Source: Oopsacas minuta
Taxonomy: Eukaryota; Animalia; Porifera
NCBI GenBank assembly: GCA_024704765.1
Contig: JAKMXF010000183.1
Coordinates: forward strand, 1 to 7,680
Length of the DNA stretch: 7,680 bases
Direction of reading: 5' to 3'
Both the position numbers and the translations under genes were made by a program. Under the pieces are notes generated by a model, which saw nothing but the letters and a program-made list of their open reading frames with translations, was not told the DNA's origin and did not search any database. Position 1 is the stretch's first letter; each line of letters starts with the position of its first letter. Positions 1-7,680 of the stretch are shown here, one piece after another.

Positions 1-12
1 CCAGATGCTTTA

Positions 13-396
13 ATGAATGATTTATTGATTCAAAGTAAAAAAGTACGATCGATTAATCAGAATACTAAATTCATTGGTGGAGGAGATGTTAATGGAAGAG
101 CTCTACTAGTTAAAAAATCACTCCTGTCAGCAATGTGGGATGCTTCTTCACTAGATTTCTATGTTTCTAATCTCTCTATAATATTGTGGTTTTACTGGGT
201 GTATGTATTTTTCAAAATTCCGGAGATCAATAGTATCAAGATTTTTGAAAATTTCAAGAACAAGTTACCTTCCTTTTTACGTCTACTCACTCGATTCTTT
301 AAACTTCACATTTCCAACCATGTTCAGCGATATATCCCTATTTTGGATCCTCTTATGTTTATTAATCTATTTGTTAATAGTATTGATTGTGTTTAA
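13..396 (+). other. 127-aa ORF of uncertain status; N-terminal part weakly resembles the start of the GIMAP-like ORF at 6847
   Basis: Listed in the ORF track. NTKFIGGGDVNGR resembles NTKFVLVGDHNCGM at 6853. The rest is low-complexity F/I/L/N/K-rich sequence typical of AT-rich non-coding frames. Confidence 0.2.
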
Positions 397-430
397 AATA
401 TTCAATTATGAACCCGGCTAGGTTAATATA

Positions 431-459
431 CAACAGAACCTCGAGCCCTCGATTATCCG
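431..459 (+). repeat. Isolated degenerate Tc1/mariner-pogo-type MITE terminus remnant
   Basis: TA|CAACAGAACCTCGAGCCCTCGATTATCCG resembles TA|CAGTAGAAC-type termini such as the one at 2651. No convincing partner TIR was found. Confidence 0.3.
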
Positions 460-860
460 TGTGAAAAGAAATATTCCAATTATTATTTTCTTGATTGACA
501 GGAATGTAAATCTGCTTGTCAACTTCTAATTGAACGATATCATAATGTTAGACATATATTCAATTCGATATAGTTAATACTTTAATTTGGAGTTCTTTTA
601 TTGTTTACACCAACACGTAACGTAATATGATAGACCTATAGCAATCTGTTAATTCATTAATTAACACCAAATTTGTGACATGATTTTGAATTTTTGACAA
701 AGAGCAGAAGTTCATATAAATCATACAAACTGTTCAGATATGTAGATTGTGAATTTGAACTAGACATACTTTCAATCATAATGTTATATTGCATTGACAA
801 TCAAGACAGACCCATTATAGTAAGGATAATTGTATGGAAATTTAGATATTGGCTAAATTG

Positions 861-1275
861 ATGGGAAACTCAGAAACAAGTTTGCCAAAAAGCAGGAAAC
901 AAAGCCAACACCTCCATTACCTGTACAAACCCCGCCACATAATGTTACACCAATTCCTCCTAAAAGAGATTTTGATCGCACTTTCATACTAATCGGTAAA
1001 TCAAATAGCGGTAAGAGCACTTTAGCTAATCTGTAATACGAAATTAAGGATAAAGTAACGTTTCCTGTTCACCCATAATTTTTTTCATTTTTCGAAAATA
1101 CAAAGATTTTTGAAACCATATTTCCTAATTGTTGCAAGTTAAATGTGGCGTAGATTTCGGCAAATATATTCAAGAGGGTGGTGATGAAAAGTTTTGGAAC
1201 TATTTTCTAGTCCCCGGCTCTTATTCAGGGAAATACGGTAGACAACCCATACCGATATTATACTCTACTTGCTAG
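861..1275 (+). pseudogene. Disrupted P-loop GTPase gene, AIG1/GIMAP-like, with an N-myristoylation-like start
   Basis: ATG at 861 gives MGNSETSLPK. A 1-nt shift in the A-run at 887-891 joins it to KQETKPTPPLPVQTPPHNVTPIPPKRDFDRTFILIGKSNSGKSTLANL, followed by a stop at 1034-1036 and then YEIKDKVTFPVHP*. The Walker A motif GKSNSGKST lies at 995-1021. In another frame, 1153-1275 reads DFGKYIQEGGDEKFWNYFLVPGSYSGKY, which parallels DSLEQHVKEMCKSKEWDYLLSRVYGRF of the 6847 ORF. Confidence 0.65.
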
Positions 1276-2272
1276 GATCATTTCTATAGGACTTGTCCAA
1301 CAGCTTATAACCTGATGAGCAAATCTGTCCAACCATGATGAAGATATCTCCCCCTGTCCTTTCAGGATGTGGAACAGTCACTCTTCTCTTTGATGATTGT
1401 CCTCTTTATAGGAGGAAAGGGGGACAACTAGTGTTGTAAATGAATATCTTGTATTCAATAACCGGTTGTCGAATGCTTTTGTCATAAATACCCGATTAAC
1501 TGGTTAATGCATTTTATTGCAAAATTGACATACAAAAATTGTACTAAATGTCAATAAATGAAGTTCAACTAAATAGAGATATATTTTAGTGGTAATAATA
1601 ATAATCGGATAATCTTTGTCCGGATTGATTGAGTAACCGGTAAGAGCTACAAACTTGAAATTTGGCATGTGTGTGGAATGCGGTAAATCTAGGAACATGT
1701 TCCAAGATCTAAGCGATATCTCAAAAATTATCTGAGATAGGTGGCGAAATGTATTGACCTATCAGATTTGAGGGTTTACCAATTATGGTAATCATATGAT
1801 ATAGGCTCTAACCCAGTAACTATGTAACTATGACTAAACCACTCTCTTCTGTGGCTATGTCATGTAACCCACTACATTGCGGATTCTATTGTATCCATTA
1901 CTTCAACACACTCACACTAACATTGATGGAATTTCCTCTACAAACACATTGAAATCCTCTCAAAAATGAAATGTTACATTCCTAATTTTAACTTAGTAAA
2001 TTCATTTTGCAAATTCAAATTATATTAATTGCTAATAGATTACTAAGGAAATCTAATTACAATAAAAATTGACTACAGTAATGTATTCAAATTCTTTCAA
2101 TAAATTCTCTGCTTACTACTGATATTTGACTGGAACTGTATACAAACATACCTAAGTACTCAATATGTTTCCAAGGACTAAACAATTGACTAATGTGTTG
2201 TCATATGATATTCCAATAATATGACCTAACAGTACCATAGGATATACATGAGATCTATTTGGGTTCCATATA

Positions 2273-3001
2273 CAGTGAAACCTCTCTAATCGGGGCCTCT
2301 GAAATCGGAGTATTGAATTTCGCGAAAATATTTTCCCATACAAATGAACCTCTGGGATCGGGAAATAGCGACAATCGGGGAATCGGGGCAAACCCTGAAA
2401 ATCTAATTCTTTCAGCTTGCATAGAACTAATACTAATATCCCCTACGCAATCGGGGCATCAATACTGAAATCAACTCAATAAACTTTTATTTCGCAATAA
2501 CTATCGAATAAAACACAATATAAATGCTATCTAAGCGAAATTTTCACTTTAGAGAGGTGTTCAGGATAAGCAATATGTAGCAGAATTAAATATTTTAACG
2601 TTACAGTTTAACCAGCAATACGAAACAATAGTATGACATAATATGAACTACAGTAGAACTCGGTTAAGACTTACTCGGCTTAAGACGTGCTCTCGGATAA
2701 GACTTACTTGTCTCCAATAACCGAAATTCTCTCCTATCTAATCCATTATAAATGATTCCGTTAAGACGTGCTAAATTATTCTTCCCAAAAGGACAAATGT
2801 ATTGAATGGTACTCGGATAATTCGTGCTCGGTTAATACGTACTTTTTATTGTTTCCCAAGCTAGTACGTCTTAACATATATACGGGTAATAGTGATTTTG
2901 ACACAATACCACACTGAAATCCAGAATCGGGGAATTTCCACAATCGGGGCGTCAAAAATTTTCCCAGTATCCTGCATGCCCCGATTCCAGAGGTTTCACT
3001 G
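2273..3001. mobile_element. Non-autonomous MITE of the Tc1/mariner-pogo (Tigger-like) type, 24-bp TIRs, TA target duplication
   Basis: Left TIR CAGTGAAACCTCTCTAATCGGGGC (2273-2296). The reverse complement of the right TIR (2978-3001) is CAGTGAAACCTCTGGAATCGGGGC, 22/24 identical. TA flanks at 2271-2272 and 3002-3003. Internal AATCGGGG motifs at 2288, 2373, 2381, 2449, 2925 and 2942. No transposase ORF. Confidence 0.9.
2651..2875. mobile_element. Second TA-inserting MITE nested in the first, right TIR truncated
   Basis: TA (2649-2650) followed by CAGTAGAACTCGGTTAAGAC. Repeated CTCGG(T/A)TAAGAC-like motifs at 2659, 2674, 2692, about 2758, 2812 and 2827. An inverted GTCTTAAC at 2868-2875 matches 2663-2670, but the outer 12 bp of the expected TIR are replaced by ATATATA. 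Confidence 0.7.
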
Positions 3002-3571
3002 TATTTCGCAATCTAACATATCAGATAAGTGAGTTTACGAATAAGGAAATAATGTATTATTCGATCTTAGGATCTAACTTTGGTTAAGTAGATTGCAAAA
3101 ATTAACTAATTGTTCCTATTTTGCAAAATTATTCAAATGGCAATTTATTAAACCTGTATCTAAGCTAGTGAATGTAATCATTACAGTACTTAGATATTAT
3201 TTTACCGCTTATAGTGAGTAGTTTAAATGGTATGAAATGCTCAAACAGTGAAAGACATGAAGATAAATTACTGATAAACGTTTACCTAACTATATTATGT
3301 GGAATTAATGATTAATTTATGGCCAATGTAATGCTATCGAATGGCGAACACTTTATCGCCTGGACATTTAGTCGGGATATTCATCGATAAGTATATTCCG
3401 GAAGTATTAAATAATAAAACGGTCACAAATTTTAATATATGCTGTATTATATGGAAGAGATAAATAAGTGTATTAAATTATATAAACGAGATACGTGTAT
3501 TATATGTGTGGTTTAAAATTGAAAGTTGTGTGCTATCCCTTTTAAATAGGAGAGAGTTTCTCTATTGTCAT

Positions 3572-3587
3572 CATAGGTGTCGATCTT
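3572..3587 (+). repeat. Left terminal inverted repeat of the hAT element
   Basis: CATAGGTGTCGATCTT, inverted partner at 6617-6632 (14/16). Confidence 0.8.
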
Positions 3588-3606
3588 GACGGGGCAGGCC
3601 CCGTCA
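3587..3606. repeat. Perfect GC-rich subterminal palindrome
   Basis: TGACGGGGC-AG-GCCCCGTCA, 9-bp arms. A related motif GGGCCTGGCCC lies at 6582-6592 near the right end. Confidence 0.8.
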
Positions 3607-3659
3607 GGTTTTGGGCTATCAGACTTCGGAAGTTTTAATTACGTTTGTCAGGGGTAATT

Positions 3660-3850
3660 CATTTAACAAGGAAGCCATTAATTATTAATACAGTTTCACG
3701 CTTTTCTATAACACCGATTATTTTGTATTCAGAATCCTGACCCATGTTCACTAACTAGAGGTGTTCACTATTTGGAAGTTAAACTGTACTTACATTTTCA
3801 CGGAAGCCATTAAGTATTTATTCTGTCATTTAGCAAGGAAGCCACTAGTT
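3660..3850 (+). repeat. Subterminal direct repeats of the hAT left end (GGAAGCCAYTA x3)
   Basis: Core copies at 3670-3680, 3802-3812 and 3837-3847. Extended copies CATTTAACAAGGAAGCCATTAATT (3660-3683) and CATTTAGCAAGGAAGCCACTAGTT (3827-3850) are 21/24 identical. Confidence 0.75.
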
Positions 3851-3931
3851 CTAGTCAAAGTAGTTACGTATATACATTTGAACTTTCAATTAATTATTAC
3901 AATTTCTATCCTTCTAAATGGATAGATTCTA

Positions 3932-6439
3932 ATGTCTAGCTTGAAACGTACTGAACCTATGTCGCATGAAGCGCAACACCCTGAAAAAAAGAGATAGACC
4001 CTGCTCTCATCATTTCTTCCGACGGCAACTAAATAACTTCCCCGTCGGAAACTAAGTTCTACAATTCAAACGAAGTTCCCACGTCCAGCAAGGTCGCAGA
4101 TATATCTTGTGACGATCTCGACGATCAACATGTGATTGGTAGTGCGTTCGAGGTGCATTTGGGAATTTTGAAAAACGGCTTCCTATTTTGCAAGATGTTA
4201 GCATGTTACCGAATGTGCTTCCAAGTGCCGAATGTAAAGATGGCCGTAGTAGATTTCTCAAGAAAGAGTGGTTCAAGAAATATTCCTGGTTGAAGCTCAA
4301 TGACGACCTGTCACTGTCTGTATGCTATTGGGCAATCCAAAACAAGCGAATCCACCCATCGGAGCGTGGAAACACCCTGGAGAACTCCAAATGGACCAAG
4401 ACGAACACAGAAGAGGGCTGGGCCAGCTTCAAATATGGAAAGAGCCATCTGGACGGCCACGAGGGCGTTGACCACACTAATGCGTGGCGTGTATATCAAA
4501 TGGAGCTGAATAAGCAAAATTGTGATCCTATGTTTGAGACAAAACGCTCCGAAGAAATCAGAAGAAACAGAGTGGGGCTCAGGGTGACTTTCGATAACTT
4601 CATGACGTGTGCAACCCAAGGACATGGTGATGAGAAGCAGACTGGAAACCTCTGGAATCTTGTGTCTTTAGTGAGCCGGTTCAACAAAGATGCCAAGAAA
4701 TATTTCACAAATGACTCAGATTCCAAGATCAAGTTTCTCAGTTCGGGAATTCAAAATGAAATGATAATGTTGTTGGCTGACAATCTGTTGAAGTTCTTCT
4801 CATCTAAAATCCGCGAAGAATCTACCGCTGGACAGGCCAAAGCAGAGGGACGTTTCTTTTACTCTTGTATCATGGACGAGACTGAGGATATTAGGACGCG
4901 TGAACAAGTCAGTGTTGTGTACGGTATGTAGATGCTGAGTTGGCTCTGACAGAAGTATTTCTAGGGTTCTTCCACACAATAACAACCGACGCTGGAGCAT
5001 TGCTAATGGTTCTTAAGGAGGCTCTCGTTTCCTTAAACCTTCCGTTTGGGAACTTCAGGGGACAGGGCTATGATGGGGCAGCCAATATGAGTGGATGTGA
5101 GCACGGTCTCCAAGCTAAGGTCAGGGAGGAGAACCCGCGTGCTCTTTGGATGTATTGCTTTGGACATGACCTAAACCTTGTAGTGCAAGACAGTATGAAG
5201 GACCGTGATATGGAGAACGCAATTCAAAAAATGCACTCTGTCATAACTTTTATCAAGGCATCCCCGAAGAGGTACGAGGTATTTAAGAAGATGGCAGCAC
5301 AAGAAGGTCACTATGACCGTCACGAGATAAGACCACTGTGTCCAACCAGGTGGGTAATGAGACTAGCCTCTGTCGATAGCATGCTTCTGCATTATACTAC
5401 AGTATTAATGCAACTCGAGACCGCTCTGGATGACCGTGAGCTCAAGCCTGATAAGCGCGCAGAAACACAAGCGTTCGTACGCTCCTTGGAGGAGTTCAAT
5501 ACGTACTTTTGTATCAGAACTTTCCAGAAGCTATTGCTCATCACCAACCCCATTCACGTGATGTGCCAGGCTAAACGTGTCACTGTAGGGAACGTGAGGT
5601 CCTGGGTCCAAAGTTTGATTGCTACACTGTCTGGTATTGGGGCAGATGAAGTTGGTGCTGCATTCTTCTACCAGGAAGTAAAAGCCGCTGCTCACAAGCT
5701 GTGGATCGACGAACCAAAGCTTCCTGGAGTTCCCCGAGCTCGGCGCGGAGATGCCGCTGATGTTGATGATGCTGACGAAATCTCTAATCGCATCGAAGAG
5801 CTCTACGTCAAAATATTTATCAAGATAAGATATTATGAACTTTGTAATTCAAAACAAGTAAGCATTAAATTACAACATTGTTTTTGCAAGGTTTTCTCTT
5901 CAGCTGCAACATCTCTGATCCTGCGGTACTCACGCCAGGACCTTCGTATGACGGAACTTCTACGCCACTCAATCGAGGATCCTGACATGGCAGAAGCAGA
6001 GTTGACCGAGCTCATAACCTTCTACGATGGCGACCTACCAAGCATGGAACAATTTAAATGGGAGAGGCAGGCCTGGTATGGTAGGTGTGACGAACAGGTT
6101 ATAGAAAAGACTTGGGAAGGTCTCAGGAAGGTTTTATCTTCTGAGCACGGAATGCGAGGAATGCTAAAAGGGATGCACACAACTCTAGTGTTGTACCTAG
6201 TCCTACCCGCCACCACCTGTGAAGCGGAGCGGTCGTTCAGTATGCTTCGCTGGCTGCTCACCTACATACGCTCCATGCAGGGCCAAGAGAAACTCAGTGG
6301 CCTGGCCATTCTAAACTGACACAGAGATGTTGTACGTGAGGTGCTACCAATAGGGAAGATGATGGAAAATTTCATTGAGAGGACGACTGTGAGGAGGAAC
6401 ATGTTTTTGATGTGGAGAACTACTGAACTAGATTTTTGA
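3932..6439 (+). pseudogene. hAT transposase pseudogene (TTF-type zinc finger, DUF4371, DDE core, hAT dimerisation domain)
   Basis: Motifs: WFKKYSWL..SVCYW and H..H (TTF-like finger); NRVGL..QGHGDE..GNL..IQNE (DUF4371); IMDET (first D); GQGYDGAANMSG (second D); CFGHDLNL (CxxH); LCPTRW; PATTCEAERSFS (E). Lesions: stops near 3995 and 4034, a frameshift near 4130-4150, a 1-nt shift near 4920 (restores QVSVVxRYVDAELALTEVFLGF), and TGA at 6317-6319 followed by in-frame HRDVV..ENFIERTTVRRNMF to TGA at 6437-6439. The start at 3932 is tentative. Confidence 0.9.
5825..5890 (+). other. Probable phase-0 intron in the transposase with the GT donor mutated to AT
   Basis: 66 nt with 15 G+C (23%) inside roughly 50% GC coding DNA. 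It begins AAG|ATAAGA (GTAAGA-like) and ends TTTTTGCAAG|GTT. Removal gives EELYVKIFIK|VFSSAATSLILRY, which fits the usual hAT segment. Confidence 0.6.
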
Positions 6440-6616
6440 TTTTTGTGAATTTCATAGTTGCGTCTTCTTATAGTTTATGCTTTTGTTCAGTTTTGTTGGC
6501 TAAATTTAATGTTAAGACTTATTATATTAGACGTACTATGTACTATTATGAATTTCGACGCAATGAACCCCGAAGCCTCGTGGGCCTGGCCCGTTAGCTT
6601 TATTCTGAAATCTGAA

Positions 6617-6632
6617 AAGTTCGACGCCTATG
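6617..6632 (-). repeat. Right terminal inverted repeat of the hAT element
   Basis: AAGTTCGACGCCTATG, inverted partner of 3572-3587. Confidence 0.8.
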
Positions 6633-6798
6633 TTTACATAACTTAGTTTTTGTTCAGCTTCCACCAATAAAGTATAATTACATCTCATACATTAATTCAA
6701 CTGTTCTTAACCGTGGGCGTACCCCCAAGGGAGACCCATCCTATTAGGATATAATTATATTAGTATATGGAATCGTACTTCAGCTTATTTGTGGTACA

Positions 6799-6845
6799 CT
6801 GATAATCTTCGAATTTTGTTTGCTTTTTTCTTTTTGAAACAACAG
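6799..6845 (+). promoter_or_regulatory. Likely 3-prime splice acceptor immediately upstream of the GIMAP-like ORF
   Basis: CTGAT branch-like motif (6799-6803), pyrimidine tract TTTTGTTTGCTTTTTTCTTTTT (6814-6835), then AACAG|CATG. An in-frame TGA lies at 6835-6837. Confidence 0.55.
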
Positions 6846-6846
6846 C

Positions 6847-7680
6847 ATGAGTAACACCAAATTTGTATTGGTTGGAGATCACAATTGTGGCATGAACTCT
6901 TTACAAAAGATGTTAGAACAGACTCGTAACAGTTCTATTAAGGTAGAATGTTTGAAGGGTGAAATATTGAACGCTAAACCTAAGTTTACAAAGTTACTAC
7001 AAGACAGATCAAACTACACAGTGTTCCTTATAGTAATTCCAATAACATTGAGAGTGCCACCAGCGCAATGGTTAGATTGGCTGAAGACTGAATGTAACAA
7101 TTTGGCTCTTTCATCTGTTAACCTTTTCAGGAATGCAATAATTGTATTCACTCATGTAGACAAGGTTAGCCCAACTCTTGATATTGACTCATTAGAACAA
7201 CATGTGAAAGAGATGTGTAAGAGTAAAGAGTGGGATTATCTGCTTAGCCGTGTTTATGGCCGTTTTGTCTGTGTAAACTCAATCTTACAAGAATTAGAAT
7301 ACAGACGTAAAATTGTGAATGAAATTATTAAAATTTCCAAACCATCTTACACAATCTTGATCCATGGGAACAATCATGCGAATTCTTCAATACTATTCAC
7401 AAAATTACAATTATCCGACTGCGATAATGTAATTGAATTGAAAGATATACGAATGAAGTTCTATTTCTATCCAGATCTTGATCTATTCCAGGGATTACAA
7501 CAGCATGATTGTGGAGATATTATCAGGAATTTGATTGGTAACCCTGTGTACCATGGTCAGGGCATTACTCTCATTTTACTATTAATCAGTCAGGAAGAGA
7601 TATTCTCCAGAGACATGAAAGAGATGATAATTGATCTTCCACACAATGAACATTATCGGATGGACCTTAAGACTGATAAG
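6847..7680 (+). CDS. AIG1/GIMAP-like protein with tandem degenerate G-domains; open to the window end (3-prime partial)
   Basis: Manual translation gives 278 stop-free codons starting MSNTKFVLVGDHNCGMNSLQKML. Domain 1 has a degenerate P-loop (GDHNCGMN), VFLIVIP, FRNAIIVFTHVDKV (AIG1-type TxxD G4) and YLLSRVYGRFVCVN. Domain 2 starts near 7348 with YTILIHGNNHANSS, KFYFYPDLD and GITLILLLISQEEIF. It is probably absent from the ORF track because it has no stop inside the window. Confidence 0.75.
   Translation, partial: MSNTKFVLVGDHNCGMNSLQKMLEQTRNSSIKVECLKGEILNAKPKFTKLLQDRSNYTVFLIVIPITLRVPPAQWLDWLKTECNNLALSSVNLFRNAIIVFTHVDKVSPTLDIDSLEQHVKEMCKSKEWDYLLSRVYGRFVCVNSILQELEYRRKIVNEIIKISKPSYTILIHGNNHANSSILFTKLQLSDCDNVIELKDIRMKFYFYPDLDLFQGLQQHDCGDIIRNLIGNPVYHGQGITLILLLISQEEIFSRDMKEMIIDLPHNEHYRMDLKTDK

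Follow-up and report, generated by a model that had tools for sequence, protein, structure and literature searches.

The locus considered here raises the question of whether a long open frame, whose product resembles the GIMAP family of immune-associated GTPases and is stripped of the motifs that bind the nucleotide, is the gene of a pseudo-GTPase or the remains of one. In the glass sponge Oopsacas minuta, the frame occupies positions 6847-7680 of the forward strand, at the end of scaffold C183. The window, that is, the whole stretch of 7,680 nucleotides analyzed, is the entire scaffold. By combining structure prediction, profile comparison, phylogeny, and substitution analysis, we arrive at the reading that the open reading frame (ORF) is probably the 5' part of a tandem AIG1/GIMAP-like gene in which both G-like domains are dead, and that its product would be a non-catalytic, membrane-anchored partner or scaffold. 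Its family, which is AIG1/GIMAP-like, has expanded in the lineage and is arranged in tandem clusters in O. minuta. Fold, homology, motif loss, constraint at the level of the clade, an anchor-like tail in complete members, and genomic pairing are the demonstrated parts of this reading.

An open frame that runs off its scaffold

The frame starts with an ATG, with an A at -3, and continues for 278 sense codons to the end of the contig. It is annotated here as a partial, single-exon coding sequence for a tandem AIG1/GIMAP-like pseudo-GTPase, covering about 62% of an expected ~450 amino acids, with complete paralogs measuring 429-455 amino acids. The probability of a 278-codon open frame arising by chance, calculated from the base composition (~35% GC), is about 1e-9. 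The frame was absent from a mechanically generated ORF list because it runs past the end of the source. A reading made from the letters alone, referred to below as the sequence-only reading, had called the ORF intact. This holds for the 278 codons, which contain no stop, but not for the last ~170 codons of the C183 copy, which would encode the remaining part of domain 2 with a hydrophobic tail and lie beyond the contig end.

A close copy of the gene on scaffold C116 is likewise cut off by the end of its contig, and its last codon is the one at which the window ends. The last 99 nucleotides of the C116 copy match the first 99 nucleotides of scaffold C45 at 99 of 99 positions, and those of the window do so at 95 of 99. 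The published O. minuta genome is a SPAdes assembly with k up to 99 (PMC10280926). Given its perfect overlap with C116, C45 continues the C116 gene in the k=99 graph, and it contributes what C116 lacks of domain 2, along with the hydrophobic tail. The window copy ends at the same assembly node as C116.

A first domain with a GIMAP-like fold and lost motifs

Domain 1 corresponds to residues 1-166 of the window ORF, 166 amino acids compared with 212-228 in intact paralogs. It was modeled with AlphaFold2 from an alignment of 18 sequences, giving a predicted local distance difference test score (pLDDT) of 85 and a predicted template modeling score (pTM) of 0.83. When the model was searched against the PDB with Foldseek, the best match was GIMAP2 (3p1j; E=1.7e-6, template modeling [TM] score of 0.70), followed by further GIMAP2 entries and by GIMAP1, 5, 4, and 7, with TM scores of 0.57-0.70 for the top matches. 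The domain 1 family profile, in which the window is the first row, places GIMAP7 (E=3.2e-7), GIMAP4 (3e-6), and GIMAP5 (2.2e-5) first among all PDB sequences, across the full profile length.

On this framework, the losses and the retained elements can be located. The P-loop (G1) reads GDHNCGMN (6874-6897, +) where intact paralogs have GxxxxGKS, such that Lys is replaced by Met and Ser by Asn. In the family alignment, the stretch from helix 1 to the position of the DxPG strand is ~47 residues shorter than in intact paralogs, a gap that spans the switch I/G2 Thr, one strand, and DxPG (G3) and leaves only ECLKG; by comparison with the same paralogs, RNSSIKVECLKG (6925-6960, +) is the leftover of the switch I, beta2, beta3, and G3 region. 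A hydrophobic core strand, TVFLIVIPIT (7018-7047, +; strand 57-65 of the model), lies at the position of the "conserved box" strand of GIMAPs. It is followed by IIVFTHVDK (7138-7164, +), a strand with a retained AIG1-type G4 (THVD) that is seen in both the family alignment and the domain 1 profile and is aligned to ILFTRKEEL of GIMAP7; within it, the family shows no variation at T102 and next to none at H103. The last strand of the domain, GRFVCVN (7258-7278, +), falls in the G5 region and is aligned to CGNRCCAFSN of GIMAP7. At the arginine-finger position of GIMAP7, inspection of the alignment found no consistent residue across the family. A conserved linker, ISKPS (7333-7347, +), in which S164 is invariant and P166 nearly so, marks the boundary between domains 1 and 2. 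With a modeled G-domain fold and degenerate G motifs, the encoded protein is predicted to be a pseudo-GTPase by fold and by motifs.

A second G-like domain in tandem

In the secondary structure of the domain 2 model, what follows domain 1 forms another G-like domain and not an extended coil. It opens with YTILIHGNNHANSS (7348-7389, +), the first strand and a degenerate P-loop equivalent, which in the window reads GNNHANSS; the P-loop lysine of domain 2 is absent in every paralog examined, even in those with an active-looking first domain. Further along are FYFYPDLDLF (7459-7488, +), a strand with a vestigial G3 equivalent in which PDLD replaces DxPG, and GITLILLLIS (7561-7590, +), a core strand that hhalign places in register with TVFLIVIPIT of domain 1. 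The paired segments of the two domains are TVFLIVIPIT/TLILLLIS, IIVFTHVD/SVLFTFGE, and GRFVCVN/GRYIWMS.

The domain 2 model was built for the complete domain 2 of the second unit of a copy on scaffold C166, which is 86% identical to the partial domain 2 of the window (pLDDT of 84, pTM of 0.84). Its best Foldseek matches were GIMAP7 (3zjc) and GIMAP2 (2xto), with E of ~1e-7 and TM scores of 0.61-0.67. GIMAP7, 2, 1, and 5 ranked above G-alpha and Toc34, with TM scores of 0.57-0.67 for most chains. We assign domain 2 as GIMAP-like because of this model and its Foldseek matches, together with the weak in-register hhalign match. Both halves of the protein are thus modeled as GIMAP-like G folds, which is consistent with an internal duplication.

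The observations of the sequence-only reading on these two domains were borne out. A first P-loop with Lys and Ser replaced, a very short G2/switch region without a recognizable DxxG, and retained G4 and GRFVCVN strands are all found where it had placed them. The tandem arrangement that it proposed agrees with the structural matches of both halves to GIMAPs and with AIG1-positive paralogs, and the degenerate domain that it saw following at once is recognized from YTILIHGNNHANSS and GITLILLLIS and from the GIMAP-like model of the paralogous domain.

Across the family, the plan is an N-terminal G domain, the conserved SKP linker, a second domain of ~195 residues, and a hydrophobic C-terminus of ~45 residues in two segments. 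The hydrophobic C-terminus is present in all complete members and in C45, and the window ends before it.

A family with a Lys-less clade

The window has seven matches in the genome at the DNA level, itself included, and 21 at the protein level; the closest named proteins are the hypothetical, partial O. minuta proteins LOD99_11172 and LOD99_10584. Near copies lie on three scaffolds (C116, C166, and C23). The C116 copy has 93% nucleotide identity to the window, and the C23 copy is a complete gene of 455 amino acids with 57% amino acid identity. A further copy, on C362, is broken by a premature stop, and about a dozen distant paralogs have 26-34% identity. On C166, two dead-clade units share one frame of 769 amino acids (C166:5202-7508 = L003:329-2635), in which AAG stands in place of the ATG of unit 2, and unit 1 has lost 9 codons in frame and has no hydrophobic tail; this fusion may be a four-domain pseudo-GTPase or a decaying tandem.

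The link from these sequences to AIG1 can be made through the relatives. In BLASTP, the window ORF matches AIG1-positive paralogs with E=1e-22 and 1e-15. On Pfam AIG1 (PF04548; gathering score of 27 bits), intact paralogs score 44-64 bits and the fused C166 copy, which belongs to the clade of the window, scores 37.3 bits. The first domain of the distant paralogs is canonical, with GxxxxGKS, switch I Thr, DxPG, and THxD, and paralogs on C133, C119, and C166 combine a myristoyl-type MG start and an intact first domain with a dead second domain. The intact-type proteins L016, L017, L018, L020, and L024 begin with MGxxxS/T, possibly a candidate N-myristoylation signal; members of the dead clade begin with MxxxKF, without that signal. 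One of the intact-type genes, L016:1105-3444 (C133; 780 amino acids), also carries a C-terminal tandem repeat rich in Pro, Asp, and Thr, with units such as LISYDTPLIPED, placed after a glycine-rich hydrophobic segment.

A maximum-likelihood tree resolves three groups, namely, intact, intermediate (MQV-type), and Lys-less. P-loops of the MQV-type group include GAVNCGKS, GGIDSGKQ, and RGVDSVKS, and its switch region is shortened. All seven Lys-less sequences form one clade (support of 100/100), which contains the window, C116, C166, C23, and two proteins, P0003 and P0004, from other ENA assemblies (ERZ25071281, whose 171-kb contig L026 carries P0004, and ERZ26869290). The P-loops of P0003 and P0004 are GDVNSGIV and GNENSGIA, and the P-loop Lys and Ser/Thr are replaced in 7/7 clade members. 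As the clade spans both O. minuta and ENA proteins, the loss of the lysine is therefore older than the split of those lineages. P0004 sits in the middle of a tandem, AIG1-positive array in which five or more AIG1-family genes share one strand (723, 508, 437, 517, and 404 amino acids). The 723-amino-acid gene of this array appears to have an extra dead domain.

Between P0003 and P0004, the ratio of non-synonymous to synonymous substitution rates (dN/dS, Nei-Gojobori estimates) is 0.19 at a synonymous rate (dS) of 0.85. On the strength of this ratio, the dead clade is maintained by purifying selection at the level of the clade.

A putative non-catalytic partner

When these features are placed together, a mechanism can be proposed. 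In the family plan, an AIG1 G domain is followed by its nucleotide-dead twin and then by a hydrophobic C-terminal anchor. In the clade of the window, domain 1 has also lost its nucleotide-binding apparatus, through the Lys-to-Met and Ser-to-Asn replacements and the ~47-residue deletion, with THVD (G4) and the core fold kept in the dead domain. The complete protein would then be unable to bind or hydrolyze GTP in either domain. GIMAPs homo- and hetero-oligomerize on membranes, where GIMAP2 scaffolds on lipid droplets, and GIMAP7 stimulates GIMAP2. By analogy with this oligomerization, the dead protein would probably be anchored in the membrane and, without catalysis of its own, serve as a partner of or scaffold for active paralogs, which it would join through its G-domain-like surfaces. 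The sequence-only reading had suggested that it might serve as a scaffold, decoy, or sensor.

A bolder form of this proposal, which we think rather unlikely, would cast the whole Lys-less clade as conserved double pseudo-GTPases, anchored in the membrane and serving neighboring AIG1 paralogs as obligatory non-catalytic partners. Active family members are located in the same arrays as the pairs of MQV-type and window-type genes. If this form were true, pseudoenzyme control of GIMAP-type immune GTPases would already have existed in one of the earliest-branching animal lineages, and domain 1 would have been released to diversify as a recognition surface.

Weighing the evidence

Several observations weigh against reading this ORF as part of a functional, doubly dead GIMAP-like gene, and they concern both its recognition and its state. 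Pfam AIG1 returns nothing with the window ORF even at E<=1, the Pfam scan of that ORF yielding sub-threshold noise alone (Mab-21_C and MTS_N), and phmmer with the window ORF finds no GIMAP chain among PDB sequences. The domain 2 profile retrieves nothing above noise from PDB sequences. The hhalign match between domains 1 and 2, over 97 columns in register with E=3e-4, is weak, with a probability of 39%. The C183 copy has no 3' end in the assembly, and its intactness covers the 278 codons only. Deep dN/dS comparisons have dS of >1 and are saturated.

The difficulty of recognition extends to related queries. Searched with phmmer against PDB sequences, an intact paralog gives nothing relevant, and a full-length mixed family profile, in whose alignment the G2/G3 columns are mostly gaps, finds no GIMAP match in the PDB. 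An AIG1 or G-domain match, on which the sequence-only reading had let its case depend, is thus obtained for the fold by Foldseek and for the relatives, which are AIG1-positive, but the window ORF itself remains below Pfam AIG1.

The other point is the state of the copy. It could be proposed that the C183 copy is a young, undisrupted pseudogene or a neutrally drifting duplicate within a functional clade, its frame being open only on account of its recency, and this is a possibility that we take seriously without favoring it. Recent O. minuta copies have dN/dS of 0.56-0.98 overall and of ~1 in domain 1, where the window shows such a ratio against both C116 (0.96, from 8 synonymous and 30 non-synonymous changes) and C166. 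The changes private to the window number 5 synonymous and 14 non-synonymous, where ~4 non-synonymous to 1 synonymous would be expected under neutrality, and in domain 1 they split 1 to 11; the window branch is indistinguishable from neutrality. As to the open frame, ~5% of random substitutions in the window ORF make a stop, and the frame would still be open after ~26 neutral substitutions in ~25% of cases. In addition, a 5.7-kb transposon nest splits the C183 copy from its former upstream region, and the sister copies are decaying, C362 through its premature stop and C166 through its fused units, lost ATG, and tailless unit 1.

Set against decay are the domain 2 part, where dN/dS between the window and C116 is 0.20 (Fisher p=0.003), and the indels that distinguish the four recent copies, two in number and both in frame. 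Conservation also extends over the ATG with its context and over the nearest ~110 bp upstream, and the 278 codons hold no stop. The dN/dS near 1 that the sequence-only reading had taken to speak against a functional gene is found in domain 1 of the recent copies and on the window branch, but not at the level of the clade, where comparisons of the window and its sisters with C23, P0003, and P0004 give 0.13-0.35. The C183 copy itself may be drifting or diversifying.

The latter possibility would account for the raised non-synonymous rate of domain 1 by diversifying selection on a recognition surface, for instance, that of a microbial decoy or sensor. The domain 1 changes on the window branch could be taken in this sense, as could dN/dS values of 0.96-1.12 in several pairs, the constraint on the domain 2 part in pairs with the window copy, and the tandem expansion that the family shares with other immune gene families. 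It would also fit the finding that IAN/GIMAP genes respond to microbes in another sponge, the demosponge Dysidea avara (PMC11229196). The counts are, however, too few for a dN/dS significantly above 1, and relaxation after the loss of catalysis predicts the same pattern, and we regard this explanation as improbable. That domain 1 might bind guanine nucleotide non-canonically, through G4 (THVD) and G5, as an atypical, non-hydrolyzing switch seems hardly credible, for although THxD is among the most conserved features of the family and some recognized pseudo-GTPases keep nucleotide binding, in all seven clade members other residues stand in place of the P-loop Lys and Ser/Thr, the deletion has taken out the switch I Thr together with DxPG, and the conservation of THxD may be structural.

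Locus context

The surroundings of the tandem pseudo-GTPase gene bear on how it duplicates and on the state of this copy. At the other end of the scaffold, positions 4-396 (+) hold the 3' end, ~110 codons and a stop, of an MQV-type, AIG1-like partner gene whose start is lost at the contig start. This end has 66% amino acid identity to the upstream gene on C116, and positions 4-327 code for the C-terminus of the partner. Window positions 3-986 are colinear, at 89%, with the 977 bp directly upstream of the C116 gene. The order of an MQV-type gene followed by a window-type gene recurs at four loci (C23, C362, C116, and C183), and it therefore follows that the two genes duplicate as a pair.

Within the colinear region begins a pseudogene fragment (935-1075, +) from the N-terminus of an intact-type paralog, which reads ...FDRTFILIGKSNSGKSTLANL before a stop and is 81% identical to residues 21-67 of L019, the gene upstream of the C166 copy. 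Ahead of the stop it still encodes ILIGKSNSGKSTLANL, including a canonical P-loop, GKSNSGKS. The C116 version of this fragment breaks off at ...FDRTF, right against the start codon of the dead-clade gene, an arrangement that suggests a deletion at C116.

The repeat and transposon nest (987-6640, no strand assigned) has no counterpart at the colinear C116 locus. One of its components is a hAT-like DNA transposon of ~3.07 kb (3573-6640), 90% identical to C337:134642-137725, with ORFs at 4188-4931 and 4940-6319 that have weak matches to DUF4371 and the hAT dimerization domain. The element has an imperfect 12-nucleotide terminal inverted repeat (3572-3583 and 6621-6632), and a search for a target-site duplication found no clear 8-bp copy at its flanks. 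Many other scaffolds carry its two ends (3597-3867 and 6448-6632) side by side, an arrangement that suggests non-autonomous hAT-like copies with internal deletions. Short interspersed repeats at 2264-2652, 2874-3004, and 3040-3337 have dozens of genome copies at 77-97% identity. Between the hAT-like element and the ATG of the window ORF remain ~200 bp, of which positions 6740-6846 (+; ~110 bp) align with the C166 copy as a conserved proximal upstream region.

Comparison with known systems and significance

Among solved structures, vertebrate GIMAPs (GIMAP2, 7, 1, and 5) match both domains best, and they share with domain 1 the THxD-type G4. Complete sponge members also share the C-terminal hydrophobic anchor of vertebrate GIMAPs, and GIMAP2 has two hydrophobic segments. 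Sequence identity between domains of the window family and GIMAPs in structural alignments is 8-19%. Unlike vertebrate GIMAPs, domain 1 of the window is without the P-loop Lys/Ser, switch I, and DxPG, and a dead G-like domain is fused to it.

Other AIG1 proteins resemble the sponge family in architecture. GIMAP8 has tandem AIG1 domains (PMC4201521), three in number, and tandem AIG1-type domains in one polypeptide are common to both. AIG proteins of the mollusc Biomphalaria glabrata include dual AIG1 domains, transmembrane segments, and members without G1-G3 (PMC7053062), and a lineage-specific tandem gene expansion is shared by the mollusc and sponge families. Unlike GIMAP8 and the mollusc proteins, the sponge family has a conserved clade with two dead domains, its domain 2 is beyond Pfam detection, and its host is a hexactinellid. 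Invertebrate GIMAPs sensu stricto have been described as an AIG1 domain with a coiled coil (PMC7053062), and GIMAPs have long been stated to be undetected in sponges (PMC8857920, PMC7053062); the O. minuta genome paper makes no mention of AIG1, GIMAP, or GTPases (PMC10280926). In a full-text literature search, "pseudoGTPase" together with "GIMAP" returned one paper only, on septin evolution.

Recognized pseudo-GTPases include the tandem pG1 and pG2 domains of p190RhoGAP and CENP-M, which likewise have kept the G fold with degenerate motifs and are presumed to play a scaffolding or regulatory role. These belong to unrelated G-domain families, whereas the sponge pseudo-domains arose inside an AIG1 expansion and come with a predicted membrane anchor.

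In conclusion, GIMAP/AIG1 GTPases are poorly understood immune-associated proteins of patchy distribution, and this locus adds to the evidence that the AIG1 family of a glass sponge is sizeable and expands in tandem. The gain from the C183 copy itself is modest, as it is one more copy, truncated and possibly decaying. The family to which it belongs forms a graded series. At one end of it stand members that look fully active; at the other, the two G-like domains are both nucleotide-dead, and selection at the level of the clade is still purifying. This series amounts to a natural experiment on the change from GTPase to pseudoenzyme, and it gives candidates with which to ask whether dead GIMAP-like proteins regulate active ones.

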